Of a DNA stretch of 64,000 nt, positions 1,370 to 52,707 are shown in pieces. Each line of letters starts with the position of its first letter. Within the stretch, counting starts at the first letter, position 1. The position numbers were made by a program, and so were the translations under genes. Origin of the DNA: Trichosphaerium sp. ATCC 40318 (lineage: Eukaryota; Protista; Tubulinea); NCBI GenBank assembly GCA_038496445.1, contig JALMLS010000120.1, forward strand, positions 1-64,000, in the 5' to 3' direction. Under the pieces are notes generated by a model. That model did no database searches, was not told the origin of the DNA, and saw only the letters and a program-made list of their open reading frames with translations.

Positions 1370-4300
1370 TTATTGATCTCCAGACAACGCTAGTGCAACA
1401 TCTAATGCGAAGCGATCTTCAAAGTGTTCGATGAGATCATCTAACCATTCTCTGACCTCTTCTTTGGTTCTCAATTTCTTTAACTCTTTTGTCATCCTTC
1501 CTTGAATGTAGGCATCTCTAACGTATGGAGATCCTTTACCAATCAAATTCTTCAATCCTGATTTGATCTTCGTTGCTTTCATCTTGGGGGCTACAGCTGC
1601 TATATCTTTGAGTAATCCTAGTAATAGATCCGTCCTATGTGCTTTATTCCTTGTATTTATGCGTCTGTGGGTCTTCTGTGTTTGTATCTCTTGCGTAACT
1701 ACCCCTTTTTTGAGTGTATCTGCCAGGTCTTCTGTCAATTGTATGTCTTTTGTTGGTTCTACATAGTCGTCATCGCCTATCTTTCGTATCTCTTCATCGC
1801 TTTCGAATTTGTTAAAAATAAATGTTTCATCCTCTGGTCTCAGGAATGAATCTATGAACGGTTTAACCCTTTCCACATTGATGACTCTGCTCATTCTGCT
1901 GTCTTCTGGTAAATTTAGTAGGCATGTGGTTGGTCCAGGTCTACTGAGTATCGTGTAGGGTCCTCTCCATTTGCAGGTAAACTTTCCTTCATCTTCTTGT
2001 CGGTATGGTACACTGAGCCATACTAGTTGACCTGCTTTGTAATCTACGAATCGTCGTTTTTTGTTGTAATATCTCGCTTGATCTTTCTTCGCTTTCAGTA
2101 TGGCTTTCTTCGCTATCTGGTATGAGTATCTCAATCTATGTGCCAGTACATCTGCCCAGTGAGACATCTTGTATTTATCTGGTATCTGTACTTTATCTTC
2201 TGATAACATATCTAGTGGTATGCGTGGTTCTCTTCCAAACATAAGCATAAAAGGCGAGTACTTGGTAGAATGATGTACTGCAGTCCGATATGCGTACAGC
2301 GCGTATGGGATCCAATAATCCCAATCGTTTTGTTGCGCATTTACGAATGACTTCAGTATTTCAACGATAGTGTGGTTGAACCGTTCGGTTTGTCCATCCG
2401 TCTGTGGATGAAACGCTGTGGTTCTTTTCGGGTGGATGTATAGCATGTTCGTCACTGTAGATAAGAACTTTCCCGTGAAATCTTTGCCTTGATCGGTTAA
2501 TACCTGTTTGGGTAGACCGTATCTGAAGCAGAATTCTTTAACGAATACCGGTGCTACGTCTGTGGCGTGATGACTGACCAATGGATATGCGTCCGACCAT
2601 TTGGTGAAGTGATCTGTGATCACCAGCATGTACTTATATCCCCTTGCTGTTTGTGGTAGCGGTCCTACTATGTCCATGGCTACCACTTGCATCGGTTCTA
2701 GGATAGGGAAGTTCACTGTGAATCCACCTTTAGGTAATCTTGGCGTCTTAGCCTTCTGGCATTTTTTGCATGATTCACACCATTCCCTCACATCTGCGTA
2801 CATGTTGGGCCAGTAGAATCGCTCACTAAGCCTTTGGTACGTTTTAATGAAACCAAAGTGTCCTGCGAATGGTGCATCGTGGCCTTGTCTCATCACGAAA
2901 TTCTGCAGCATACTTGGTACGTATATTTTGACGCGTCTGTTGCTGGCCTTTCCCTTGTGCCTTTTATCCACTTGATATAGGATATGTGTATCATCATCAT
3001 ATCCCAGGCCCTTGACTTTTGTTATGAATGTGGAGCGTCTGAATCCGTTCTCTCTGCGTGTCCATTCGGGTATGGTGCCTTTGATTATGAATTGTATGTA
3101 CGCTCTGATATCTGGATCTGTTTTCTGACATTCACTCCAGTCGATCGGTTCTGTTTTTTGTACTGTTTGCTTCAGTTCTTCACTGTCATCGCTTCTATCT
3201 ACTTGGTGGCGTGTTTCTGTGTGATCTTCATCTTCTATGTGATTTAGTTCTTCGCCTGATGATAGTGGAGGTCTTGTGAGGGCGTTGGCGTCTAAGTGTT
3301 TGGAGCCACGTTTGTATTTGAGTTTGAAGTCATAGTTCTGTAACTCTAGTAACCATCTAGCCACTAATGCTCTCGGGTTCTTTAGGTTCTGAATGTATTC
3401 CAACGGTTTATGGTCTGTATACACCATCAAGGTGAATTGAGTAAGGGATATATATCCTGCAAACTCTTTTATTGCCGATATGACTCCTAGCGTTTCTCGC
3501 TCTATTGTAGAGTATTTCCTCTGCGTAGCTGTAAAAGCTTTGCTAAAATAGGCGATCACGTGCTCTCTTCCATTTATTCGTTGTACTAGTGTAGCGCCCA
3601 ATGCTACTTGTGATGCGTCTACATGCACTTCGAATGGCAATGTGAAATCTGGATGTTGTAATATCGGTGGTGATATCAGCATCTCTTTTAGTGTTTCAAA
3701 TGCCTTTTGATGTTCTTCTTGCCATTTCCATTCGACGTCTTTACGTTTTAACTTGTTTAGTGGGCTCGCGATGTGTGCATATCGGTGTACGAATCGTCTG
3801 TAATATCCAGTTATCCCCAAGAATCGTTCCACCTCTGTGATATCTCTAGGTGCCGATGCATCTCTGATCGTCTTGATGATGCGTGGGTTGGTAGCTATTC
3901 CGTTAGCTGTCACTACATGTCCAAGGAATTCTACTTCATCTTTGAATATGACCGTCTTGTCTGCTTTCAGTTTGATGTTATGTTCTCGCAATCTTTGGAA
4001 CATGAAGTTGAGATGTACTAAGTGTTCTTCGAATGTACTGCTGAACACGATGATGTCATCTACATAACAAAGACACACTTGCCATAACAGTCCTGATAGC
4101 ATGAGGTTCATGTGTCTCTGGAACGTGGCTTGCGCATTCTTCAAACCGAATGGCATTCCTAACCATTCGTATAATCCCCATGGTGTTGCAAATGCTGTTT
4201 TGGACCGATCTCTCTTCGCCATCGCTATCTGCCAGTATCCAGAGATAGCGTCAAAGAGTGAGAAGAACTTGGCTCTGGACAATGCTTCAAGTAGTTCAGT

Positions 4301-6200
4301 GATTCGTGGTAATGGGTGTACATCTTTCTTGGTTACTTTGTTAAGCTCCCTGTAGTCGATGCAGAATCTCCATGTACCATCCTTCTTTTTTACTAACACT
4401 ACGGGCGCCGACCATTGCGATTTAGATTCTTGTATCACTCCCATTTTCAGCATCTTTTCCACTTCGTCTTTCACAATTTGGTACTTCTGAGGTGGTAAAG
4501 GTCTGTATGGTATGTGTACCGGTCTTGTTCCCTCTTTGGTGTCGATATAATGCTCTGTGCCTTTTGCATCTGCCGGTTGTTCTAATTTTGATGTAAATAC
4601 GTCTAGATTATCGGCCATGAATGTGTAGGCTACTTCTTTCTGTTCCTCTGATATGTTACTTCCCTCCATTTTGAACATGTGTTTCGCTTTCGCTACATCT
4701 TCTTGTGTCACTTTTTTGCACGATATCTTGATGTTCTTCATCTCTTTTTCGTAATCTATATCCAGAGATGTGACTTCTTCGTCGTCTGTGATAGTGCGAA
4801 AGCTGGCAATGTTGCATCCCTTCTTTATTATTCGCGTACGGTTTGACATATTCATCACTTGTGTAGGTACCATGAATCTGTTAACCACATTGCAACAGGT
4901 TCGAGCCAGTTGTATGCCCAATTTATTGAATACTACATCGTTGCCATTGACGTCATCGTGTTTGTGTGCTTCTACTATTCCTGTTTTCGCTGTCACCGGA
5001 GATGATAGTCGTGCCCAGAATACGCATTGTGAGTATTTGGGTATTTTGACTCGTCCTTCTGTGATAACGTGTGTTTCATCTGGCTTCGCTGCTGCCTCTC
5101 TGATTCTGTCGATATGAGTGATCTCGCCTTTGGCATTTGTGATGACCTCGTCTTTGAAGTCGAGTTTGAGTCCAAATTCTTTGATCATGTTGAGGCCCAG
5201 TAATAATTTGTATCTGAATTTCTTGACGACGTGAAATAGTACGTTGCGTTTATCTGTTCCGATTGTAATCGGTACTGTCGCTGTTCCAATGATCGGTAGC
5301 GGCTTGTTGTTTGCTGCGAATACTTTTGCGTGATTGTTGGTTCGCATCGCTCTCCGTTTGCTTATTCGTCGCAGAGTATCGTGACTGATGATGCTGCATG
5401 TCGCTCCAGAGTCTATGACGGCCGTGGTGTCTTTTATGTTTCCAATCATCACTTTAGCGGTGGTAATCTTGTATGAGTACTGCTTCTTAACAGGGCCGTC
5501 TGCAATAGCGTTAACACTGTCATCGTTAAGTAGTCGAGTGTGTTCTATGCAATGGTTATGCCTTTTGCCCTCTAATGGTGTCTGTACGCTTGTCTTAGGC
5601 GTCTGGGCTTGTTCACCGTCATTTTCACTGAGCAACAAAGCAACGCCGTTCATATGCGAGCGATTCGATTGTCTTTGTGCTAGAGCGCGGTTAAAAGAGT
5701 AATTATGCCCAGTGGGCGAGACAACAACAGGGTAATTCCAAATTCTTTTATTTATCTCCACAGTGTTCACACCATTGTAACGACTAGGACATCTCACTGC
5801 AGAATGATCACGGCCGCCACAGATCTGACATATGCGCTTCTCTTCGCTATCGTCTCTTCGACTATCTCTTCTGTCTCTGTCATCGCGTCTGTGGTAGTAT
5901 CTATCGTCTCGTCTCGACTTGTCGTCGCGTCTGTATCTATCACGTCTGTCTCTATCGCGTCTGTCTCGATCATCTCGCCGGTATGAGTCATCTCGTCTGT
6001 CTCTGTCGCGTCTGTCGTTATCGAGGCGTCGTCTCTTGTCTCTGTCGTAGCGGTCGTCTTCGGCACGTGGTCGAGGGCGTCTGTCCAAAGGTCGTTTGTC
6101 TCTGTTGGTGGGTCTTCTATCTCGGCGATCTTCTGCTCTTCTGTCTTTGTTTCGATCGTGATTGTACGTCTCTGGTCGGCGTGGGTTGGATGGGTTGTCT
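1370..6200 (-). CDS. pol: Gag C-terminus (RD-rich tract, CCHC knuckle) plus Pol (aspartic protease, RT, RNase H, integrase)
   Basis: CQICGGRDHSAVRC knuckle; VIDSGATCS protease; WRFCIDYRELN, MPFGLKNA and YVDD in RT; VDAS/ERE/TDHKPL in RNase H; HHCC, MDIVGP, TDQG, GQTERFN and GPY in integrase. The frame is open back to the insertion junction at 6200. Confidence 0.96.
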
Positions 6201-7231
6201 CAGTGGTAAAATGAAAACAGGATTTTGGATATAAATCCCACTAAATTCCTTTGTTTTAGGGATTTTTAAGGTAATTTGTGAAGAATTCTTATTTTTATTT
6301 TTTTTTATGGCAGGATTTTTGATAGAATTACCATAATATTCCCTTAAATATGGAATTTTCAGAATTATTGTACAAAATCCAGCAAATAATGTTCTAATTT
6401 AGTTAGGGTTAGGGTTAGGGCTAGGGTTGAGGTTTATGAAAGTACAAATTAAGTTAGGGTTAGGGTTTAGTTTTATATTTGCAAAAAACCATTGACACCT
6501 TAGGTACATAGGTTTTTCTAGCGAACAATATCCACATGCTATTATTAAAGGTGCAAAAACCAATGGTACAGGTTAAAGTGCGTTAATCCAAAAAGTAACG
6601 GAGAACGCGTTTTAGGTGGTTTGAAAAATCACTTAAACATAACTATCTCTTACTTATCTGTTTTAGGATGATTAAAGCATTGCAACAGCCTTATTACACC
6701 ATTAAAGAATGTATTTAAAGCATTAACTCCAAGTACGTTGTTTTTAAAGCTTATTTCCACTTAATTTATCAAAAAACCCTACGCGTTCTTAATTTAGCAT
6801 TTACAAACGCATTAATTATTGTTCAGGCTCTCAAAACCAAATGCGATCAAATTACTTCTTTCGTTTATGAAGACACGATGTATTTAACTTGTACGTGTTA
6901 TTTAGGATGTTTGTATTTGTAATGATCAATAAATAAAATGACTTTGCGTTAAATCTGAACCAAAGTATCGAATAATATTTTGTGTAATTTATAAAGTATT
7001 TTTTATTGAAATCTACAAAAAATACATTAAGAAATGCTATAAAGAATACATAGAGAATTCTATATAAAATACATATGCAATTCCAAAAGTAATACTCTAA
7101 GAATTCTATGGGTAATACTTACGGAATTTCATATAAATTCAATGGGAATGAAGGAAGAGTTTTTCCGTCTACTTTTCCCATAGGAAAATAGGGTGGATTA
7201 CTTAAAAATTCCCATTTCTATTTTACTACTG
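6201..7231. mobile_element. Non-autonomous TIR DNA transposon (EnSpm/CMC-like), 1031 bp, inserted in gag
   Basis: Imperfect TIRs CAGT(G/A)GTAAAAT; 2-bp TSD CT (6199-6200 and 7232-7233); AT-rich with no long ORF; GAATT-type subterminal repeats; removal restores the gag-pol frame. Confidence 0.88.
6403..6465 (+). repeat. Telomere-like TTAGGG repeats inside the nested element
   Basis: (TTAGGG)3-CTAGGG-TTGAGG at 6403-6432 and (TTAGGG)2 at 6454-6465. Confidence 0.85.
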
Positions 7232-8474
7232 CTCGCATTGGTTTGGGCGCTTTAGGATTGTTTCGTGTTTGTTTTATCTTGGGTGTGATGATAGCGTTCA
7301 CCTCCTCTTCCTCCATGTTGTTGTTGCTCTTGCGTTCTCTCTCCTTCATTAACTTGAGCATCTTTAACTTGTCTCTGTGTTTCTGCTCTGCCGCTGTAGC
7401 CAGTTTGATGAGTTCCTCGTATTCCATTTTGGTGTTGTCGTAATGTCCGTAGTGCTTCTTTACCTTGATCTGTAGTGCTGGTAGCATGGCTGTGAAGAAT
7501 ATACGCGTCTTCTCTTCGACTGGTTGTCGCGCCATGTTTGCCCAACGATCAATATAGGCACGGAAATCTTCAACTGACTGACCAATAGACTGTTGTGCGG
7601 CTTGGAGTTTTCTATATGCTTCCTCTGTACCCCGTATGTATTGAAAGTGTCTGATGAGTGCCAGTATCGCTTTGGCTGGTTCTGTTGTATCGAGGTTGCT
7701 GACCATCGTGTAGGCGTCCTCCTGGGTGAATTTGGCCAATAAGAATAGATATCCAGCTTTGTCGATGTTGTATGTATCAACCATCTGTCGTAATCTGGTG
7801 AGAAACACGTACATCGATCGAACTGATATATTTTTTCCAAACACAGCCGACTTCTCTGGTACTTTGCCTGCCTTGCCCAATCGAATAGACTTACTCCAAT
7901 CATTGCCCACAATCTTTCCTTCGGTGTTCTTGACAGCGTATGGTAAGAAGCTGTATATGTGTTTGAGCTCTTCTTCTGAACACTCCAGTGAATGTAGCGT
8001 ATCTAGCGTGCCTCTTTCGTATGCTGATACGCTGGATGTGCTTTCGTGTACTTCTCGTCGTACTCGATCTATGGTATCCTCGTTATCGGTGTCATCGCTA
8101 TCATCTGAACCATCAGGCGTCTCGGTGTTTTTGGTGTCGGGTCCTTTGTTTTTCTCAGTTCTGTTTTTTGTTATCTTCCGTCTCTTCTTCTCCTTAGTGT
8201 GTTCTGTGGTGTTGGAGGCGCGCTTGCGTATCTTCTTGGGCGTACTAGTGAGCGTGGGTTTCCTGTTGGTACGTTTCGGAGCGGTCGTGTTTCCTTTGGA
8301 GGCGGCGCCAGCCGCCTTGTTTGGTGGAGCTTCTTTAGAGTTCTCTTCATCGGAGCTCATTGGTACTTTTATCACATCATCTTCGCTCTCGCCATTATCT
8401 TCGTTGATAGACTTTTCTTCGTTATCCCCCTGTGTATCATCACCCTCTTTAAGGGTAGCGTCATTGTCGTTCAT
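7218..8474 (-). CDS. gag: Gag N-terminal/capsid part, truncated by a stop codon inside the nested element's TIR
   Basis: 418-aa ORF starting just after the PBS; capsid-like motif QQSIGQSVEDFRAYI. Confidence 0.88.
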   Translation of the reverse strand: MNDNDATLKEGDDTQGDNEEKSINEDNGESEDDVIKVPMSSDEENSKEAPPNKAAGAASKGNTTAPKRTNRKPTLTSTPKKIRKRASNTTEHTKEKKRRKITKNRTEKNKGPDTKNTETPDGSDDSDDTDNEDTIDRVRREVHESTSSVSAYERGTLDTLHSLECSEEELKHIYSFLPYAVKNTEGKIVGNDWSKSIRLGKAGKVPEKSAVFGKNISVRSMYVFLTRLRQMVDTYNIDKAGYLFLLAKFTQEDAYTMVSNLDTTEPAKAILALIRHFQYIRGTEEAYRKLQAAQQSIGQSVEDFRAYIDRWANMARQPVEEKTRIFFTAMLPALQIKVKKHYGHYDNTKMEYEELIKLATAAEQKHRDKLKMLKLMKERERKSNNNMEEEEVNAIITPKIKQTRNNPKAPKPMRAVVK

Positions 8475-9283: not shown

Positions 9284-10710
9284 ATGGAGGAAAAAGAATG
9301 CTGTTTGTCGCCTTTAGAGTCATTTCCACACGAGATTCTGGTGTTAATATGCCACAACCTTAATGTCGAGCATTTCCTTGCTCTTAGCGTAACTTCAAAA
9401 GAGTTTAACTAGTTTTCAGCCGACAATATTTTATGGCAGCGTCTTTACGCCCAAACCTTCATAACGGAACCTAGAGGTAGCGTTTAAAAGGAACAACACG
9501 TGATTTACAATAAACTATACAAGGTGACAACATTAAGGACGCTTTCATCTGCGAATGGAAGAACAAGGTACCGTTCTAACGAAAACCACAAAAATTCGTC
9601 ACTTCAAAGTACAAACATCATTTAACACACTTAGTTGCTGTTACTTAAAATTGACAGGTCCGTATGTCATGCTGACTTATACCTCTCATCTGGTTTTGCA
9701 GTTCTTCTTATGAACAAGACGATGTCATCAACTTACGTTCACCAATGTTGAAACTGTCTAAAAAGCAAAACAAGAAGTTAAAGTCATCGCACTACAGTAA
9801 CTCTATCTTTGCTTCCCAGTTTTTTCTTATTTTGTTTTCAAATCTGAAAAACAAGCACATGATTTACTTGTATTTAGATTAGATGCTGCTTTTTTGGATT
9901 AATAGCTTCAGGATGTGTAAGTTTGTCTAAAAGGAGATTTGTTACAAGCACAACAATATGGCGTGTTAAATCTTTTCAATAGTTTTCGACATGGTTTTTT
10001 TAAGCCACTTTATTTGACTGCTTACTCACTTTGCTTTATTTTTCTGTCTCTAACGAATATTTCCAAGACTTCTATAATATTAAGATATACGTACAATTCT
10101 TTTAGTGGTAAATACGATCCTACTATTGGCACGAATTCATACAAAAAAGCATCAATCAAAACTCTTTTGCAAAAACCATTACCCTTTGCTTATTTGTCAA
10201 TTAGAAGATACAATCCTTATATCTACCTTGAAAGGAGATTTTTATTCTTATATGGACATCACAGATACATCTGGTATGTTTAGGTACTGCGAGAGTTTCA
10301 CCATTTTATCATTTATTTTTTTGTAGTTTTGCGTCCGTGCATCTTGTTCGCCATTTTGATATATTTTTCCTTGTGTACTCCATAGCGCATAAACGTAGTT
10401 TTGAAGAGCTTTCATATTACAGATACGTTATCATGGGTACTACTCAGAGACATGTAGCCATTCTAGTACGTGTAGAAAATGTGTCTTTGCACATATTAGC
10501 AAAATGACTTTTTGTGTTCACATGTGATGTTAGGTGGCAAACAAGTCCGATTTAGAAGATGAAAGACAAGTATCATATGAAGAGGGAAAAGCGCTTGCGG
10601 AGGCATGGGGTATACCATTTGTAAGAGTGAGTTGTAAGACAGGAAAGAATATTCAAAATCTTTTCTCGCTTGCAGTTGACGAATACCTAGTTAAGGTGTT
10701 GGAACAATAA
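9284..10710 (+). pseudogene. F-box plus Ras-like GTPase fusion, multi-exon, with an in-frame TAG
   Basis: Exon 1 LESFPHEILVLICHNLNVEHFLALSVTSKEFN*FSADNILWQRLY (TAG at 9410-9412). Downstream YDPTIG, DITDTSG, LVYSI..RSFEE and VANKSDLEDERQVSYEEGKALAEAWGIPF; no CAAX. Confidence 0.75.
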
Positions 10711-13270: not shown

Positions 13271-14890
13271 ATGAGAAAATACAACGACATTAGCAATAAA
13301 AAGAAGAAACTGAACTCTAAAAACATTCCCCTGTCACTCACTTCCTTTCCAAACGAAATTCTGGCATTAATTTTTAATAATCTATCTTATTCTCGCCGTG
13401 CGAGTGTGTTAGTTTGTAAAAAATTAGCAGATATTATCTGGTATCACGTGGGATTCTCTCGCATAAATATATGGTCACGAGAGCAAATTGACTTTGTTTC
13501 ATCTCGTGGGAGTCTGATTCGAAACACACCAATCAATATCATCAATTTCGAAGATATTCAGGACGACGACATTATTCCTCTTGCTGGTATTCATACTCTC
13601 AGCATAGCAAAGTACTACGACATCACTTCGTATGGCATCCAATTTCTCGCTGGTATTCATACGCTTAGATTGAAGCAATGTTACTTGGCTGATGAGGGAT
13701 TAAGTACTCTCGATGGTCTACATACTCTCGAGATGGATCAAGTTATAGGTGTTACACATTCAGGATTCTCATCTTTTAGCCAACTTCACACATTGAGGAT
13801 AACACAAATCATCGCAACGCCTCAAATGTTCAAAGAAATAGGCGCACTTGGGTTACATACATTCTATTCTAAGTATGTAAACATTTCTGATGATGATGTC
13901 AAAGAACTCGTTGGCGTCAAGGAACTCAGTATTATAGGAGCATCAGGCTACTCTGTTTATGGTCCGTCAAAAGATCCAGTCTCGTCTAAGGGTATAGCAT
14001 CACATGCTGGAGTACAAAAGCTCTGCATTGATATTTGTTTGAGCAAAAAAGCAATACAGGCACTTTCTGGAATCCACACAATACAACTAGCTATGGGAAA
14101 CGTTTTTCAATCACGTGACTTTAGTTTAGAAGGTATAACCGGCGCACATATGGTAACTATACTTAAACACAGGGTAACTGCATTCGCTCTAAAGAGTTTA
14201 ATGACAGTACCAGTACATACGATAAAGCTAAGATGTCAGGTACTTAACCAAGCATTCCAATACCTTGCTGGAGCACATACCATTGATATCTGTCACACAA
14301 ACATAACTGACAAAGAAATCGGCTTTCTGAGCGGTGTTAAGAAGTTATTACTTGATGGTACAAGAATCACAGGAACCAGGTTTGATGCTCTTTCAGGTAT
14401 TCATACTATATCCCTGAATAGCTGTACATTACTAAAAGATGAGAATGTAGCTAAGCTCGCAGGTGTACACACAATAGCACTTGCAAAATGCTCACTGTTA
14501 ACTGATATATCTTTCAAAGCATTGTCTGGTGCTCACACCATTGACCTATCTAATACCGCAGTTACTGATGAAAGTCTTAAAGCGCTTGCTGGAGTTCATG
14601 CAATCAGTATTAGAAAGACAACTGTAACAGATGTCGGAATCAAAGCTCTGGCTGGTGTTCACACCATTGATCTTGATAGTACTTTAGTATCAGATGATGG
14701 TCTTCTCGCGCTGAAAGGGTTATCCATTTTATGCATGCATAACTGTAAGAACATTACCGAAGCAGGTGTTAATAGCCTGGGTCATGTTGATAAGTTTTTT
14801 GGAAGGGAAGATGCAGTTTATCATGGATACAGTGAGGCCAGATATACAGGATCTCAACTACTGGAGAGGAGTATTCATACGCTTTCTTAA
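13271..14890 (+). CDS. Intronless F-box/LRR protein
   Basis: LTSFPNEILALIFNNL...VCKKL F-box followed by many ~22-aa LAGxHTIxL..TxVTDxG repeats. Confidence 0.88.
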   Translation: MRKYNDISNKKKKLNSKNIPLSLTSFPNEILALIFNNLSYSRRASVLVCKKLADIIWYHVGFSRINIWSREQIDFVSSRGSLIRNTPINIINFEDIQDDDIIPLAGIHTLSIAKYYDITSYGIQFLAGIHTLRLKQCYLADEGLSTLDGLHTLEMDQVIGVTHSGFSSFSQLHTLRITQIIATPQMFKEIGALGLHTFYSKYVNISDDDVKELVGVKELSIIGASGYSVYGPSKDPVSSKGIASHAGVQKLCIDICLSKKAIQALSGIHTIQLAMGNVFQSRDFSLEGITGAHMVTILKHRVTAFALKSLMTVPVHTIKLRCQVLNQAFQYLAGAHTIDICHTNITDKEIGFLSGVKKLLLDGTRITGTRFDALSGIHTISLNSCTLLKDENVAKLAGVHTIALAKCSLLTDISFKALSGAHTIDLSNTAVTDESLKALAGVHAISIRKTTVTDVGIKALAGVHTIDLDSTLVSDDGLLALKGLSILCMHNCKNITEAGVNSLGHVDKFFGREDAVYHGYSEARYTGSQLLERSIHTLS

Positions 14891-20278: not shown

Positions 20279-21350
20279 ATGCTCCCAAACAACGCTCCCT
20301 TACGCCTTGAAAAAGTTACAATTATTATTCTTGGAGATGGAGCTGTTGGTACGACATAACAGCCTCTTACTGTTAATCAACGTTAATATTACGCATTTCA
20401 GGTAAAACAAGCTTAGCTATACGTTACCAGTACAAACGGTTCCCAACCGAATACGGTACCTCTCTATTTAACTGCAATCGCTTATATTGTTTAGTGCCAA
20501 CAGTATTCGACGATTACAGGTATAAACGTGTTAAATTGATTGTTTACAAACCCTAAAAACATGTTTGTTCAGAGATGCAAACGCTAAGTTTTTAGGCAGA
20601 ACTTTATGTTTACGTTCGTTTTCTTACTTTATTCTCATTTAATTGTTTAATTCTACAATAAAAAGAGTTATTGGATACTGCGGGTACAAAGGAGCTAGAA
20701 AATGCCTTGATTTTTGGATATGCTGTAAGTTAATTAAACCCTAAAATTTCTTGTTTCAGAAGTAGAAGTATCCTCTTCCGTTTGCACGGGGTACCATCAC
20801 TGTGTTGTCATCTAATATATTTTTAGATAGCTCATGTTGCTTTGATATGTTTTAGTATTGTTTCAAGGAGTAGTTTTAAAGCTGTTAGATTCAGGGTACA
20901 AAGGAATTAATCAATACAAAAAAGTTGAAAACTACAAAGCCATTACAACTTAACATATGCTCAGTGGGCAGTTGATGTGGATCAAAATAGCCCCAACGAT
21001 ACACCTATCATTCTTGTAGGTCTGAAAACGGATTTAAGAAATTCACAAGATGACAGTGTTTCAAGAGAGGAAGGCGAAGATATGGCAAGAACTATTAAAG
21101 TACAAGAAACAACTAATTTTTTCTTTTATTCTACCGCTTCGTTTTACTTAAACTAGGCGCACTCATATGTGGAATGTAGTCCTATGACAGGACAGGGTGT
21201 TGACTCAGGTAATGAACATCTATTTGTAACAATGCTTTACAAAGAATTTGACTTGTTGTAGTATTTCATGAAGCGATATTGGCAGTGCTGAATAAAAGAG
21301 GATTCTTCAAAACACATCAATATACTTACTCTAAATGTGTTTTAATGTGA
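20279..21350 (+). CDS. Rho-family GTPase, multi-exon, atypical DTAG-T
   Basis: GDGAVG|KTS, EY|VPTVFD, WDTAGT, LICFS, IILVGLKTDLR, YVECS and CAAX CVLM. Confidence 0.88.
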
Positions 21351-32290: not shown

Positions 32291-34275
32291 TTAATAACCA
32301 GCCACATCTAGAGCTCTGGACACCATCACATTTTTGAAAACATCACATAAGTTGACAGAGAAGTGAAGAATTGAGTAGTAATGAAAATATGAGTTTGCTG
32401 TAGTCATTGTGCTGCTTTCCTCTTCATCTGTGACTGCTCCTTCATACATATGAGAAGTGAATAATAGCTGTAGGTACTCAAAAATAGAGTCCATTGTGTC
32501 TAGAAAGAAAGCGTTAGCTAAAGAGCTTGGTCCATTCTCAAAATTCAAATAGAAAAGGGGTAAAGGATTACCTTCAGGGCAATCTGGGAACTTCTCACAG
32601 AACTCACTAGGTACTATATGGTCGTCTTTGTAGATAAATATAGCCATACTACAACCTTTAGTTTTATAAAGGATATTACACCACAACGAGAACTCATGTA
32701 TTGATCTGTGTAGTTTTGTGCCGAAGATTGGATCATGTACACGGTATTCACCAAGTACAATGTTGTACATTATTAAACAATCGTTTCCGTATGCAAGTTT
32801 ATCTTGTATGACGTTTTGGAATAGTGTGTGAGACATTGAAGGGTACATAGTCAACCTAGGAAAAATATAAAGACCAATCACATTACAGTTTTTTTTTTTC
32901 CACTTGTACATCATATCAGTACTTGACATATTACTAATATATTCAAGAGGTTTGTCAGTATGTAGGAGTGTACAACACATGTTTTCAATATGTTCTGGTA
33001 TCACTGTGTATTCTTTATCCAGTATCATTGAAGCAGCTCCTTCGAAACTACCACATTGAGATTGTTAGTACTCCAAGAAAGGACAGAAAATACATACTAT
33101 TTGGCTCGCTCATCATCTTCAACATCAATTGTTTCAAGGCCTTCAGCAATCAGTTCTTGAGCAATTGAAGACTTAATTACCTCTGCAAATTTACTCTAGG
33201 TATCACGTGTAAGTTGTGGTGTAAGTGTAAGTTGTGGTGTAAGCTAACAAAGGTGTTCTTCGAACCTCAGGATTGTCTGTTGATGCCTTCAAAGCAACAG
33301 AAAGTGTGTATTTTTGAATACATCTCTTGAACGGAGAAAAGTCTGGTGCCACTATTGACCTTGCAAAACCTCCCATGCACATGTGTATATTGTTTCCAAG
33401 GAAAAGGACATTCATTCGATACTGTTTTTTTTCCCTTTTAAGTATAGAGGAGATTTTTCGGTCAGGTAAGTTTTGATGTTTCATTCTTTTCTTCATGCGG
33501 TTTGTGTGCTTTCGCTTGGAGAGTGTCTTCTGAACCGTGTATGGATTCAAACCGGCTTTATAATACTTGTTTAAGAATGCATATGTGCTAGCTCTGCTCT
33601 TGATAATCAACAGTAAGTCATAAACAGGTAATAGTACAGCGTATCAAAAAATAGACCCAACTTACTCTACTGACTTCGAATAGCCACGTGAACTGACTCT
33701 GGCAATACTTCGAATACGGCTTTGCTGTTTGTGATATCGCAAGAATACATTTGGCATCTAGAAAGCTTATCACGTGCCATACAATCTCGGTTGGGAGCTC
33801 TAAAGAACAAATGAAAAAGGTTATTTCAAACATCAGAGAAGTTGTTGGAATCTCATTCATTACCTGTGAAGTTAGTGAATGTCGTCACCTTGGCGTTTAT
33901 GGAAATGGTATTGGTGGAATTGTGTATACGCTTCTTGTACCGGAGAGATACGAATGGGTCATTGTGAGAGACGATGTATTGATGAACACTAAAAGTTCAA
34001 ACGGTTTAATGTTTGCCCCATTCACAAGAAAACTGTAAAACCGCAAAAAACGTAATTAATGCGTTTGTTGTAGCTTTGAGAACAAAAAACGAGCGACAAG
34101 CTTCACATACTGTTGACATGCTTCCAATATTGATACAGACGCAAAATTAGGTCGTTTACTGACCCGCCAAGCCAATATATCTTCAAGAACCTGTTTTTTC
34201 TAAACAAACGGCTTAGATCCAAGTCTAAAGAGCCAAAACAACCTTTCGCAATACCAAGATGTCGTACGCTTCCAT
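32291..34275 (-). CDS. G-gamma-like / F-box / degenerate G-alpha fusion protein, multi-exon
   Basis: F-box LELPTEIVWHVISFLDAKCILAISQTAK..; G-alpha-like segments in order: KREKKQYRMNVLFLG, AKYF..MILDKEYT, KLHRSIHEFSLWCN, SMAIFIYKDD, KFPDC, DVFKNVMVSRALDVAGY. Confidence 0.65.
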
Positions 34276-34943
34276 TACTTGACTGTGGTTTATGGTATTG
34301 ACTTTATTTGTACACAAGATTTACTACAATTCTACTTCAATTTTAAGTTTTGTCTCTTTTGGGTATTTGCGCCCCTTTGTAACTGCTTTATCACGTGATA
34401 AGCTTTGTTCGTACAGTATATCGCACGTGTTCCTATAAAACATAAGTTACATTTATCGTACCGTTAAGGGAATGTAGTATCAACACCAAACTACCACGCA
34501 ATACGTTCAACAACCTTGTATTTGTTGCTCTACTTTGTGTTACTGGTGCCAAAATATAAGTTCATTGTTTTCACACTGACACATTTGTAGCCACTCACAC
34601 AACGTCGTGGTGTAGTAGAAATTGATCCGGATTTACTGTAAATTGTCAAGAGAAACACGTTTTTATTGTTTTGATCTTAGTCTTGGGAAAGAACATGACC
34701 GAATAGTTTCATTTCGTTGGTTCTTGTCCATTCTACAAGACGTTCAACTTTATCCTTACGGTCTCCGCTCATTTCCAAACCGAGACGCTCAAGACGCTCA
34801 TCAAGACCGTTGGCATCAAGGGTAGAATACTCCCAGATAAGTACCTAAAGAAGAAACCAGTAAACTGCTTTTGTGAATTCCTATTCTGACCAGGCAATAA
34901 GATACATTGTAGTACTACAATTTTTTTTGCTGAACGATTGATT

Positions 34944-36268
34944 TTATTGTATGTTACACCGCTTTCCTTTTACTTTTTTCACTTTTGCGTATGTTGCATG
35001 ACGAATAGCTTCATCAAAAGCATTTTTGAAACCAATACAAGTAAGCGCTGACATTTCAAGATATTTTGCAACATGCCACTTTTGGGCTATACTAAGACCT
35101 TCATCGTACTGTACTGATGAAGGATCTAGAAAAAAAAAAGTTAATGTCGTGTCCAAACAATCAAGTTTTCTTCGTTTTGTATGTCGTACCATCCTTTCTT
35201 AAATCGGCTTTAGTACCAACAAGTAGTATGGGTACGTCTGGTAAGTTTCTTCTGACTTCAGGTATCCAGTTATTGATAGCGTTATGTAACGATTGTCTAT
35301 TAACAAGGGAGAAACAAACCATGATAATATCCTGGTGTTTATACGCTATTTGTCGAAGTCTATCATAATCTGATCCTCCTGGCATATCTACTATAGCAAG
35401 CTGTATTATCTGTCCATCGCACATGATATTAGCTGGGTAACATTCCATGACACTTGGTATCTGAAAGAAAAAAAAAATCAAAAAAAAGAGGTCATTCAGT
35501 AGGTATGGAATTCCATTCAGATTTAAAATGTGACGTCAGTGTAAATCGTACGGTGACTAAATTAACGTCATAAGACTACGTACATATTCTCCAGGGAAAG
35601 CATTGGTTGTATAGCTTATAACAGCGCAAGTCTTTCCTAAACTGAATAAAAAAGTTGTTCACCAAAAGTTTTTTTGACTTTCTCCTTTTTCTTGAACAGA
35701 AAAACAAAAAAATCACGTGCCTACAGCAACATCTCCCACAAGTGCTAGGTTTACTTTATGAGCATACTAGTTTCGGTTTCCATAATGAGTACATACAACA
35801 ATATTTTTAGCGCACGTGACGCACCTGCATGCCTTCTTGAGCCACAATGCCTTTTTCACCAGACCATTTCAGCAACGAAACTTTAAACAACCCTTTTTTA
35901 AAATGATTAGACGACAATCAAAGAAAATGTCAATGGTTTGATACCTTTGTAGTGTTTTTGGTTTTTCATATCCTTGAATCAGATTAGAAACTGTTTAAAT
36001 ACCATTACAGACGCTCACCTCAGGTGATGGAGCCTCCCAGGACCTTACACCAGGGAATTCAAGTATATGGCGTTCCCAAAGCGTATTTTTTGTTGTAAGG
36101 TTCTCCCAATGCCAAGAGACAAAGCACAGTGAACATAAATCGTACCTAGACTCGTTAAAAACGAAAACGGGTTTTTTTGTTGATTCGCCTAACAGCGTAC
36201 CACTCTACATTGGAGAAAACCTCAAGCCAGATTATATCAGGAAGTGTTTCCCACGTTAAACCAGACAT
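34944..36268 (-). CDS. F-box plus Rho/Rac GTPase fusion with CAAX, apparently intact
   Basis: Spliced model: MSGLTWETLPDIIWLEVFSNVEWYDLCSLCFVSWHWENLTTKNTLWERH..., then VGDVAVGKTC, YTTNAFPGEYIPSV, DMPGGSDYDRLR, LVGTKADLR, YLEMSALT and RCNIQ*. Confidence 0.85.
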
Positions 36269-36399
36269 TACGTTTTGGAGGTTTGACAAGTCTTTTTTGT
36301 TCAAGACCTGCAAACGGTCCCTTTGACAGGTCTTTCACTCTTCTATCTGACCTTATATATTTTATAAAACAACACGTGATTATATCCAGGTGAGCTGTA

Positions 36400-37450
36400 C
36401 GATTGGTTCTTTTTACGCAATGTCCACTTGTAATTTCCTGATACCTGTACGATCTATTCTAACTGAAGAAATACCAAGCATGGTAGTTCGACCAGTGTTA
36501 GGATCAACCTGACCCATTTCTGGTGCAAGCTTGTGTATTGAGTAAATACGTGGATACATCACCGCTGTAGCAAGTTCTAAATAGATAATATAAGCAAAAT
36601 AGCATATTCAACACATAATAGCAGTTAAGAGGAAGTATTTGGGATGTCAAAGCGTACATCGGGCATAGATATATATGAGGGTAATGATACCTATAATACA
36701 GCAGATCATGTAAGTATACCGAGTGTAAGAATTTGCATGTCGTACAACCAACAAGGTTGTTTTTATAATAAGTGACTAACGTTTGATTCTAGCCAGTATA
36801 AGTGATGAATGTGATAATGCCTTGCTCTAAAAGGAAAGTTTTAAATTTTCCTATTTTTTTCTAGTTTGTTGTTTGAGCCACAAAGTCATTTTCTTCATTT
36901 AATTCTGTATCGCCATTTTCGACTAGAAATTAGATACAGATTTACCATAGAAGAAGAGGGGCCATTTGTACTTTGTGCAGATAATGCTCATATTGTTGTG
37001 TCGTACGACAATACATTTGATGTGTGCAGAAAAAACTCTTGCAACCCTTCAATCATTCGAATGCTTTACATGTAATTCAATAAAGAAGATCTCTTGATAA
37101 CCATACTGTGGTTCTTAATGCCGTTCAAGGAGAAATAGGTGTTTTCAAACTCGCAATTAGCCGATAATGTCAGCCTATATTCAGGTAATAATTGATCAGA
37201 AATAAAATTTATTCGCTGTGGAAATTGTATCAGAGGCGAGTCTCAAACTGTCCAGACACTACCAGATATGACTTGCATTGTTTTTGTTACCACACTCAAC
37301 CCATTATGCGTACCAAACTTTAAACTCCCATACCAACTGTTTTCTCACTTATCAGGCGAGAAAGGTGACGAACATCAGGATTTTACCTTAAAATGAATGT
37401 TGAAGGCAAATGTGCTTCCGCCACAAATAGTCAATCTATTGTTGTGTTGT
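36400..37450 (-). pseudogene. Degraded Sec24-like fragment
   Basis: VMYPRIYSIHKLAPEMGQVDPNTG resembles the Sec24 C-terminal YPRL motif; flanked by many stops; boundaries approximate. Confidence 0.35.
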
Positions 37451-41403: not shown

Positions 41404-42507
41404 ATGGTGCGTTATGTATATAAATAAGACAACATTTGTATAGTACAACGGTCAATTGTTGCTGCTAGAGTTAGAAACCAAAACATTTCGTAAGAGAATT
41501 CACCAATTTTGATGTAGAGCAAGGACGAGAGTAAATCTATCATTGTTATTATTGATCCAGTCTCAAATCAAGAATATGAGATTGAAGAAGCTTTATATGA
41601 CCTCGTTGTAACGCTTGGTACAAATCATGCTTTTTGACTTGCTTCTCTAGCACAAAATAATCTGGCTAATGATTTACCGTTAGAGAAAAAAAAAATAGAG
41701 TCATGTGCTGACAGCCGTTCTCGAGTACATAAGAGACAACTTACGAAACTCCGGAACAAATTAGAAGCTTTCGCAGCCCAAGCGGAGTGTACGAAGAGTG
41801 AACGAAAGAGCCAACACGTCATTGAAGAATTAAACCAAACAATCGTTGATCAAAAGGCACGTGATTATTTTAGAACCAGTGGATTTCAAAATCGAAAGTA
41901 AACTGTGTTCTTTCTTACATCAAGCGAAGTTCGTTGTGTGTGTTCGTTCTTACACTAAGTTTAGGCAGTGATTCGTAAACTACGAAATGCGTTGGTTATT
42001 TTGAAAACGAACTGCGATGCCAAACTTGAGAACCTTTCAAACCACAAAAACAATCAAAACGTGACTGTAAAGCGACCCCATATTGAACAGTACGTCAATC
42101 CCTCTCAACAACCGAAGAAACGTAAACGTGGACCCGTGATGGCAACAGTCATTGATACAAAACCATCAATGCCAAACACCAAACGTCAAAGGTTATCGAA
42201 TAGCCAAAAAGAAAGCAACAAAAGTACCATTAACGTACCTCAAATTTCATGTCACGGTAACTCTCCTTTGTACCTTCCTGGTCGTCAGCATGTAAAGTTT
42301 GAGAGATTCTATGAACGTACAACAATCATTGCACCTGATCTTCCATCACTCTCAAATCCTTGTTCAATCAAGCAACTCAAGGCAAACTCAAAGCCAAGTT
42401 CAAAACCACAACAAAAGAAGATTGTATCAAAACCAAAGTCAAACAAGCCCAATGTCAGAACAAGGAGCAAAACGCGACTCAACAGCCAAAAAATTGGTAG
42501 TAGTTAA
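41404..42507 (+). CDS. Unknown coiled-coil/basic protein, paralog A; start uncertain
   Basis: Multi-exon; near-identical copy at 51633-52707. Confidence 0.6.
41506..42504 (+). repeat. ~1-kb direct duplication, copy 1 (copy 2 at 51730-52703)
   Basis: Long runs of identity with in-frame indels and more diverged introns. Confidence 0.9.
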
Positions 42508-51632: not shown

Positions 51633-52707
51633 ATGGTGCGTAACAAGGTGTAAAACTTTACCACACGGAAAGCTTTTGCTGCGCGTTGTGTATTAAGAAA
51701 AAGTTGTCTAAATGAAAAACAGTGTTGATATTTTGATGTAGAACAAGGGCGAGAGTAAATCTATCATTGTTATTATTGATCCAGTCTCAAATCAAGAATA
51801 TGAGATTGAAGAAGCTTTATATGACCTCGTTGTAACGCTTGGTACAAACCATGCTTTCTGACTCACTTCTCTAGCTCTTGATTTAACACAAAATAATCTG
51901 GCTAATGATTTACCGTTAGAGAAAAAAAAAATAGAGTCATGTGCTGACAGCCGCTCTCGAGTACATAAGAGACAACTTACGAAACTCCGGAACAAATTAG
52001 AAGCGTACGAAGCCAAAGCGGAGTGTACAAAGAGTGAACGAAACAACGAACGAAAGAACCAACACGTCATTGAAGAATTAAACCAAACAATCGTTGATCA
52101 AAAGGCACGTGATTAATTTTCGTGGGCATTGGTTTTACACCAAGCGAAAATATGTTGTGTTGTGTTAGCTCTTACACTGGAGTTTTAGGCAGTGATTCGT
52201 AAACTACGAAATACGTTGGTCGTTTTGAAAACGAACTGCGATGCAAAACTCGAGAACCTTTTACATCACAATCGAAACGTAACTGTAAAACAATCCCATA
52301 TTGAACAGTACGTCAATTCCGAACAACAATCGAAGAAACGTAAACGTGGACCCGTGATGGCAACAGTTATTGATACAATACCACCAATGCCAAACACCAA
52401 ACGTCAGCGTTTGATGAATAGCCAGAAAAGCGTCAATGTAGAACAAACCTGTCAATCTCGTAACTCTCCTTTGTACCTTCCTGGTCATCAACATGTAAAG
52501 TTTGAGAGATTCTATGAACGTACGACAATCATTGCACCTGATCTTCCATCACTCTCAAATCCTTGTTCAATCAAGAAGCTCAGGGTAAACTCAAAGCCAA
52601 GTTCAAAACCACAACAAAAGAAGAGTGTATCAAAACCAAAGTCAAACAAGCCCAATGTAAAAACAAGGAGCAAAACACGACTCAACCCAAAAATAGCTAG
52701 TAGCTAG
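51633..52707 (+). CDS. Unknown coiled-coil/basic protein, paralog B; start uncertain
   Basis: Duplicate of 41404-42507 with the same intron positions. Confidence 0.6.

Follow-up and report, generated by a model that had tools for sequence, protein, structure and literature searches.

Does one gene in this stretch of DNA place an F-box and a Rac-type small GTPase in a single polypeptide and, if so, what might such a protein do? The question is raised by a locus on the minus strand (36268–34944) of contig JALMLS010000120.1 from Trichosphaerium sp. ATCC 40318; the window referred to throughout is the whole 64,000-nucleotide stretch analysed, positions 1 to 64,000 of that contig. An earlier note on this DNA had read the locus as an intact F-box–Rac fusion and had proposed that it encodes a membrane-anchored, GTP-locked bait for the ubiquitination of Rac effectors. 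We find that the gene, referred to here as F-box-Rac, is a real, transcribed and lineage-restricted gene. Its eight exons join into a frame of 843 nt that encodes 281 amino acids, in the order F-box, linker of about 45 residues, Rac-like G domain and polybasic tail ending in CNIQ, and the 64 kb window carries a single copy of it.

Gene structure and transcript evidence

To define the exon junctions, contigs assembled from three RNA runs (X1, X2 and X3) were aligned to positions 34700–36500 of the window. The contigs show six of the seven F-box-Rac junctions on the window's own sequence. At the 3' end of the gene, the junction between exons 7 and 6 is seen in X1 and that between exons 6 and 5 in all three runs. 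The junction between exons 5 and 4, which removes a GC-AG intron, is seen in X1 and X2, with the joint placed at 35635/35720 and four letters ambiguous. Removal of intron 4, which joins exons 4 and 3 (35766/35825), is seen in X1 only. The junction between exons 3 and 2.5 (35892/35945) is present in X2 (record 8), and X1 (record 4) is consistent with it; the junction between exons 2 and 1 is present in X2 (record 10).

The remaining junction, between exons 2 and 2.5, is spanned by no window-type RNA contig from these runs. It is seen only in a variant transcript, L001, in which CCTGAG/GATATG joins 36019 to 35972. In X2, one contig breaks off at 36018, a single letter past one of the splice sites, and another near 35974, about two letters past the other; contigs would be broken at roughly these points by a branch between spliced and unspliced paths in the assembly graph. 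L001 is a 930 nt metatranscriptome contig (Joint Genome Institute sample 3300016894) that encodes the protein P0002 and is 92–100% identical to the window in each exon. It carries, in order, exons 1, 2, 2.5 and 3, a retained 58 nt intron 4, and exons 4, 5, 6 and 7; the junction between exons 2 and 1 and the GC-AG join (GTAG/GAAAG) are therefore present in this variant as well. Because L001 runs from exon 1 through exon 7 and includes CCTGAG/GATATG, the F-box and GTPase exons lie on one RNA. The in-frame splice from an F-box to a Rac-like domain that the earlier note had described is thus borne out by the 281-residue open frame, by the Pfam matches to both domains and by a single RNA. The gene is more than a simple two-part splice, with eight exons, two of them small linker exons.

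The frame opens with an ATG at 36268, the first after the upstream in-frame stop, and closes with a TAA at 34946–34944 on the minus strand. The F-box is split between exon 1 (36201–36268), which has the start codon and its first half (MSGLTWETLPDIIWLEVFSNVE..), and exon 2 (36019–36145), which has its second half (..YDLCSLCFVSWHWENL..) and the start of the linker and ends at the donor GAG/GTGAGC. The two small linker exons, which together supply 32 residues between the F-box and the GTPase, are exon 2.5 (35945–35972; 28 nt, DMKNQKHYK-), with an in-frame internal ATG at 35969, and exon 3 (35825–35892; 68 nt, GLFKVSLLKWSGEKGIVAQEGMQ). Strand β1 and the first part of the P-loop are encoded by exon 4 (35721–35766; YAHKVNLALVGDVAVG), and the remainder of the P-loop and helix α1 by exon 5 (35584–35636; KTCAVISYTTNAFPGEY). 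Exon 6 (35190–35460) contributes switch I (IPSVMECY), switch II (DMPGGSDYDRLR), helix α3 and the G4 motif TKAD. Exon 7 (34944–35125) contributes a shortened insert region, helix α4, the G5 motif SAL, helix α5, the polybasic stretch, CNIQ and the stop. All of these exons lie on the minus strand, as do the introns.

The introns measure, in order, 55, 46, 52, 58, 84, 123 and 64 nt, and six of them are GT-AG. Intron 4 (35767–35824; 58 nt, GT-AG) carries an in-frame TAA. The single GC-AG intron is intron 5 (35637–35720; 84 nt), which splits the P-loop between G15 and K16 (GDVAVG/KT). A GT-AG placement for this intron was rejected, as splice-like ends are obtained only with GC..AG and the join is common to three contigs. 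Three other ways of leaving exon 2 were also set aside: a direct join to exon 3 is out of frame, a direct join to exon 4 is in frame (249 residues) without any RNA support, and a join from an internal donor at 36051 to exon 3 is in frame and is contradicted by L001. An AATAAA on the minus strand (34943–34948) overlaps the stop codon and is likely to be a polyadenylation signal; L001 ends about 30 nt downstream of it, at window position 34914.

The F-box and the Rac-like domain

In the spliced exons 1 and 2 of L001, the Pfam profiles F-box-like (PF12937) and F-box (PF00646) score 29.0 bits (cut-off 24.3) and 28.1 bits (cut-off 20.5), respectively. The match covers profile positions 1–45 of 47, corresponding to protein residues of approximately 5–50, and crosses the junction between the two exons. 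Exon 2 alone gives E-values of 3e-4 and 3.5e-3, short of the cut-offs; since the cut-offs are passed only when exons 1 and 2 are spliced, the match is splice-dependent and not a chance motif. A single residue of the F-box differs between the window and L001 (L45V). With a domain above threshold and a separate C-terminal interaction module, the Rac-like domain, the protein has the layout of an F-box protein of the FBXO type, and an N-terminal F-box followed by a C-terminal binding domain is the canonical order of SCF (SKP1–CUL1–F-box) substrate receptors.

The G domain scores 118.7 bits against Pfam Ras, and exon 6 alone gives an E-value of 2e-17. By sequence, the nearest solved structures are Rac3, Rac2 and Rac1 (E-values of about 1e-50), ahead of Cdc42 (1e-43), and a word-index search places the domain at about 50% identity to Rac1 of animals, fungi and amoebae. 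For the G domain of the variant, AlphaFold gives a model with a mean pLDDT (predicted local distance difference test) of 83 that superposes on Rac1 with a TM score of 0.84; the top Foldseek matches to this model are all Rac1 or Rac3. The nucleotide-binding motifs are kept, namely GxxxxGKT (GDVAVGKT), DxxG (DMPGG), TKxD (TKAD) and SAL, and so is F28.

The surfaces around these motifs are extensively altered. Relative to Rac1, the P-loop and switch I carry G12V, T35S (T35G in L001), F37M, D38E and N39C, and strand β3 and switch II carry W56V, T58M, A59P, Q61G and E62S, with further changes in helix α2. In an alignment of 38 Rho-family proteins, mostly of the Rac type, conservation reaches 90% or more in 74 columns, and 24 of these are changed here, among them G12 and positions in switch I and switch II. 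The Rho insert between strand β5 and helix α4 is ten residues shorter than in Rac, so that most of it is gone, and in the AlphaFold model, built for the G domain of the variant, this position is coil only, with no insert helix. The domain is therefore a Rac in its closest sequence and fold relatives and in its polybasic CAAX end, and departs from the Rac subgroup in lacking the Rho insert helix and the canonical G12, T35, Q61 and W56.

Changes at G12 or Q61 abolish intrinsic and GAP-stimulated (GTPase-activating protein-stimulated) hydrolysis in Ras and Rho proteins. Both positions are replaced in both variants while the nucleotide-binding motifs are kept, which is the pattern of the atypical GTPase-deficient Rho proteins, and the alignment with Rac1 upholds the Val at position 12 and the Gly at position 61 that the earlier note had read from GDVAVGKT and DMPGG. 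The polybasic CAAX tail that it had reported is also present: KVKKVKGKRCNIQ stands directly before the stop and is identical in the two variants at the protein level. The polybasic stretch and CNIQ are probably a signal for farnesylation and plasma-membrane attachment, as predicted from the motif; CNIQ is the farnesylated CAAX box of human Rap2A.

Divergence between two expressed variants

Run X1 holds both the window-type and the L001-type exon 7, at depths of 8.7 and 7.2 (records 3 and 2), and L001 therefore stands for another allele, for a strain variant or for a paralogue of recent origin, and not for a distant orthologue. Runs X2 and X3 carry the same organism label and each contain a single exon-7 type. 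Over the 843 nt of coding sequence, 39 substitutions separate the window from L001 and there is neither an indel nor a stop, whereas the 58 nt intron 4 has two indels. The codon differences comprise 28 nonsynonymous and three synonymous changes. For the whole gene, the nonsynonymous and synonymous rates (dN and dS) are 0.049 and 0.044, giving a dN/dS of about 1.1 by the NG86 method and 0.58 by YN00. By NG86, the F-box (dN 0.0076, dS 0.031) has a ratio of about 0.25 and the G domain (dN 0.061, dS 0.043) a ratio of about 1.4. Positive selection is not claimed, because the NG86 ratio for the gene is 1.1 and the binomial P for the nonsynonymous excess is 0.08.

The differences are unevenly distributed. 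A 174 nt block (codons 147–204) that extends from switch II to helix α3 has none (P = 0.004), and exon 7, which spans helices α4 to α5, is the most divergent, with 16 of 182 nt changed. The exon-6 contig of X1 carries only four of the seven differences that L001 has there. This mosaic of divergence between the variants points to exchange between alleles or paralogues, by recombination or gene conversion, or else to a chimeric assembly.

Proposed function and alternative explanations

The reading that we favour, with a probability of about 0.5, is that F-box-Rac may be a membrane-tethered SCF receptor in which a frozen Rac-like domain serves as the substrate-binding surface. The G domain would still bind nucleotide, as its G1, G3, G4 and G5 motifs are intact, and G12V and Q61G would deprive it of GTP hydrolysis; it would be permanently 'on' or act as a non-switching pseudo-switch, as in Rnd, RhoH and RhoBTB. 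The F-box would dock the protein on SKP1–CUL1 and the lipid tail would hold the assembly at the membrane, leaving the G domain to bind substrate for an SCF ligase tethered to the membrane. The targets would likely be proteins that recognize a Rac-like surface in its GTP form, for example GAPs, effector-like proteins or Rac binders of foreign origin, and canonical Rac effectors would not necessarily be among them. The 843 nt frame free of indels, the F-box dN/dS of about 0.25 and the identical tail of the two variants support this reading.

The GTP-locked, membrane-anchored SCF receptor of the earlier note thus remains a reasonable proposal from the motifs, the changes at G12 and Q61, the layout and the tail, all of which fit. 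The evidence does not back its further suggestion of a bait for Rac effectors, given the altered effector loop: of the four residues at the core of this loop, three are replaced (F37M, D38E and N39C), and W56 and the Rho insert are lost. A G-domain dN/dS of about 1 or more also speaks against Rac effectors as the targets.

Several observations weigh against the proposed receptor. A59P and T58M might impair nucleotide binding. Position 35 varies: the Ser reported there earlier is confirmed in the window by the alignment with Rac1 and is replaced by Gly in L001, and the effector selectivity that had been attached to T35S is therefore no conserved feature. A whole-gene dN/dS of about 1.1, or 0.58 by YN00, implies little or no purifying selection on the G domain, and database searches found no homologue with the F-box–Rac architecture outside this organism group. 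At the RNA level, L001, the sole contig across the whole gene, keeps intron 4, which ends the F-box reading frame; X2 splices this intron differently (35797/35744, with a 9 nt deletion) and still meets the TAA; and the productive join of exons 3 and 4 was found in one run only. As intron 4 has an in-frame TAA, its retention uncouples the F-box reading frame from the GTPase, and its removal in X1, retention in L001 and alternative splicing in X2 indicate that splicing there is leaky. Finally, the 5' ends of L001 and of X2 record 10 both lie at 36266 and miss the AUG by 2 nt. The likeliest reading of these ends is that transcription starts sharply and leaves a very short 5' untranslated region; trans-splicing or an upstream exon was rejected, as no AG acceptor precedes 36266.

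Alternatively, the protein could be a constitutive, membrane-bound Rac-like signal that limits itself, the F-box being a built-in turnover handle; through SCF autoubiquitination, its activity would be set by synthesis and degradation and not by a GTP cycle. The activating-type G12V and Q61G would suit such a signal, F-box proteins are commonly unstable within SCF, and it is established that the GTPase-deficient Rnd3, RhoH and RhoBTB are controlled by abundance. A turnover role has also been proposed for the F-box of TbFRP by its authors (PMC3593210). However, the heavily changed effector loop (F37M, D38E, N39C and T35S or T35G) and the loss of the Rho insert make signalling via normal Rac effectors doubtful, and the fast evolution of the G domain is unlike that of a core signalling switch. 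We consider a self-limiting signal unlikely, though it retains some force.

The divergence data could instead reflect a young, exon-shuffled F-box chimera without a selected function that is transcribed at a low level and is drifting. An overall dN/dS of about 1, with 28 nonsynonymous against three synonymous codon differences, is in line with drift, and the failure to find homologues elsewhere, the leaky splicing and the several further F-box genes in the same window are all compatible with it. Drift fits poorly with a coding sequence that has no indel in 843 nt when the 58 nt intron has two, with the conservation of the F-box and the CAAX tail, with the retention of all of the nucleotide-binding motifs and with the invariant block from switch II to helix α3 (P = 0.004). 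Both variants are, moreover, expressed in run X1. A functionless chimera therefore appears to us to be distinctly unlikely.

The leaky splicing could also mean that the fusion is absent from most transcripts. Retention or alternative splicing of intron 4 would then yield an F-box-only peptide of about 100 residues, and an F-box-less GTPase of 216 residues may start at the exon 2.5 AUG (35969); this AUG is in frame, and the G domain made from it would be complete. The TAA in the intron that L001 keeps, the same stop met by the 35797/35744 splice of X2 and the position of the first AUG outside the RNA contig coverage all favour uncoupled products. Against them, intron 4 is removed in X1, the junction between exons 2 and 2.5 is in frame, the 843 nt frame is uninterrupted in both variants, none of the contigs begins at exon 2.5 and, under a scanning model, the AUG at 36268 would be used first. 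The RNA contig depths at the gene, 2.7–11, are too low to weigh the isoforms. Overall, we regard uncoupled products as very unlikely to be the main output of the gene.

The most speculative possibility, and to our minds an improbable one, is an integrated decoy, in which a Rac look-alike SCF receptor would capture and ubiquitinate foreign Rac-directed proteins at the membrane; these could be bacterial or giant-virus mimics of GAPs or of guanine nucleotide exchange factors (GEFs), or Rho-modifying toxins. Such toxins act on T35, N39/41 and Q61, and the changed residues include these target positions. A G-domain dN/dS of at least 1 beside a conserved F-box and tail, the co-expression of two divergent variants in one culture and the other F-box genes in the window are likewise consistent with a decoy.

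Comparison with known systems

The proposed membrane-tethered SCF receptor has partial counterparts in several protein families. RhoBTB similarly combines, in one polypeptide, a non-canonical and presumably non-cycling Rho-family G domain with an adaptor domain for a cullin-RING ligase. In RhoBTB, however, the adaptor is a BTB domain that engages CUL3 and lies C-terminal to the G domain, whereas here it is an F-box, for SKP1–CUL1, at the N-terminus. F-box-Rac is also small (281 residues), keeps the polybasic CAAX end and is without most of the Rho insert. It ends 13 residues after helix α5, and when the exons and the two open reading frames of L001 are scanned with Pfam, only F-box and Ras/Roc matches result, with no BTB domain. 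Rnd1–3 and RhoH share the substitutions at the equivalents of Ras positions 12 and 61 and the presumed regulation by abundance, and Rnd proteins share a farnesyl-type CAAX box; unlike F-box-Rac, they are without a ligase adaptor domain, still have the Rho insert and depart less from the canonical switch I.

TbFRP of Euglenozoa, a 63.8 kDa protein, consists of FYVE, F-box and Ras-like GTPase domains (PMC3593210). It resembles F-box-Rac in having an F-box N-terminal to a small GTPase and, as is predicted for F-box-Rac, in being targeted to a membrane (PMC3593210). It differs in reaching the membrane through a FYVE domain that binds phosphatidylinositol 3-phosphate, and not through a CAAX box, and in that its GTPase is Ras-like and not Rac-derived (PMC3593210). 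In the L001 reading frames Pfam finds no FYVE domain, and the F-box-Rac frame starts four residues before the F-box.

Membrane anchoring also separates F-box-Rac from the ARF family, as ARFs are anchored by an N-terminal myristoyl group and amphipathic helix rather than by a C-terminal prenyl group. Among ARF-family GTPases, lineage-specific fusions to an F-box or a BTB domain have been described, as has TRIM23 (PMC8358228, section 13). These proteins show, as F-box-Rac does, that small GTPase domains have repeatedly been drawn into ubiquitin-ligase architectures (PMC8358228), although the GTPases belong to the ARF and not the Rho family. Lipid anchoring of SCF receptors has precedents of its own: prenylated F-box proteins exist, for example FBXO10 (PMC11042265). 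Like F-box-Rac as proposed here, FBXL2, FBXO10 and Legionella AnkB are SCF receptors anchored to the membrane by a C-terminal CAAX lipid; they bind substrate through leucine-rich repeats (LRRs), ankyrin repeats or other repeats, whereas here a whole Rac module stands in that position.

Searches for the same architecture were made at several levels. With exon 6 as query against 1.84 billion cluster representatives, the only close relative was P0002, a G-domain fragment of the variant. A word-index search with P0002 returned, beyond the query itself, canonical Rac only, and the F-box with the linker as query gave no match. The N-terminal extensions of 39 length-matched Rho matches contain no F-box-like motif, and in a metagenome scan there was, among the matches listed, only canonical Rac at 45–52% identity. 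No F-box–Rho or F-box–Rac fusion was found in the literature or among the nearest database proteins, which is not an exhaustive census of architectures.

Genomic context

Further F-box and G-protein genes lie in the window. On the plus strand, an F-box exon at 9284–9409 (Pfam E-value of about 2e-4, just under the cut-offs on a partial exon) is followed by Ras-family exons at 10020–10707 (Pfam Ras score of 42.9 bits), including one at 10534–10707, about 1.1 kb past the F-box exon. These Ras-family exons have an apparently degenerate P-loop (..NISKTS..) and DTSGM in switch II. Together the exons probably form a second F-box–small-GTPase fusion, as a putative gene model. A Rho-like gene at about 20300–21200 on the plus strand has a canonical GDGAVG and PTVFDDY and the switch II sequence DTAGT, with Thr at the Q61 position; a motif scan found no F-box exon upstream of it. 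The gene that adjoins F-box-Rac has an F-box exon at 33678–33827 on the minus strand that passes PF00646 (21.1 bits; cut-off 20.5). Its 245-residue C-terminal reading frame (32294–33028, minus strand) has no Pfam match and no homologue by the word-index search, and a 'pseudo-G-alpha' label given to it previously could not be confirmed. The nearby genes that combine an F-box with a G protein hint at a lineage-specific repertoire of such adaptors.

A single-exon F-box–LRR gene lies at 13271–14890 on the plus strand and encodes 539 residues. By features, its nearest ESM Atlas clusters are mostly F-box or LRR clusters of giant viruses (Nucleocytoviricota); a Chlamydiota LRR cluster appeared only in a structure search that started from one of the giant-virus matches. 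Just 100 nt downstream of the F-box-Rac stop is a terminal coding exon on the minus strand (34684–34844) that encodes ..LDERLERLGLEMSGDRKDKVERLVEW.. followed by a stop and is SAP-like by eye. Its RNA depth, 96–138, is far above that of F-box-Rac, and contigs of X2, X3 and X4 extend upstream of 34844 by about 240–255 nt into sequence that is absent from the window (at up to three mismatches). Either the rest of this gene is far away or the exon is a duplicated 3' fragment.

Two paralogous reading frames on the plus strand, at 41968–42507 (179 residues) and 52192–52707 (171 residues), lie 10 kb apart; they encode basic proteins rich in Ser and Lys (MIRKLRN.LV.LKTNCDAKLENL...). An uninterrupted Ty3/gypsy-type polyprotein frame of 1572 residues occupies 1370–6088 on the minus strand, with protease, reverse transcriptase, RNase H and integrase recognizable by eye, and is adjoined by a Gag-like frame of 418 residues at 7218–8474.

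Implications

The fusion of a small GTPase to a ubiquitin-ligase adaptor is already known from RhoBTB, TbFRP and the ARF–F-box proteins; the pairing of an F-box with a Rho or Rac domain was not found described. If the proposed receptor is correct, evolution would have wired a non-hydrolysing Rho-type G domain to a cullin ligase more than once, by way of BTB and CUL3 in RhoBTB and by way of an F-box and CUL1 in F-box-Rac, with the Rac membrane anchor kept in the latter. F-box-Rac would then be a compact natural analogue of engineered 'bait-E3' degraders and, at 281 residues, a tractable model for the use of a frozen GTPase surface as a substrate receptor.

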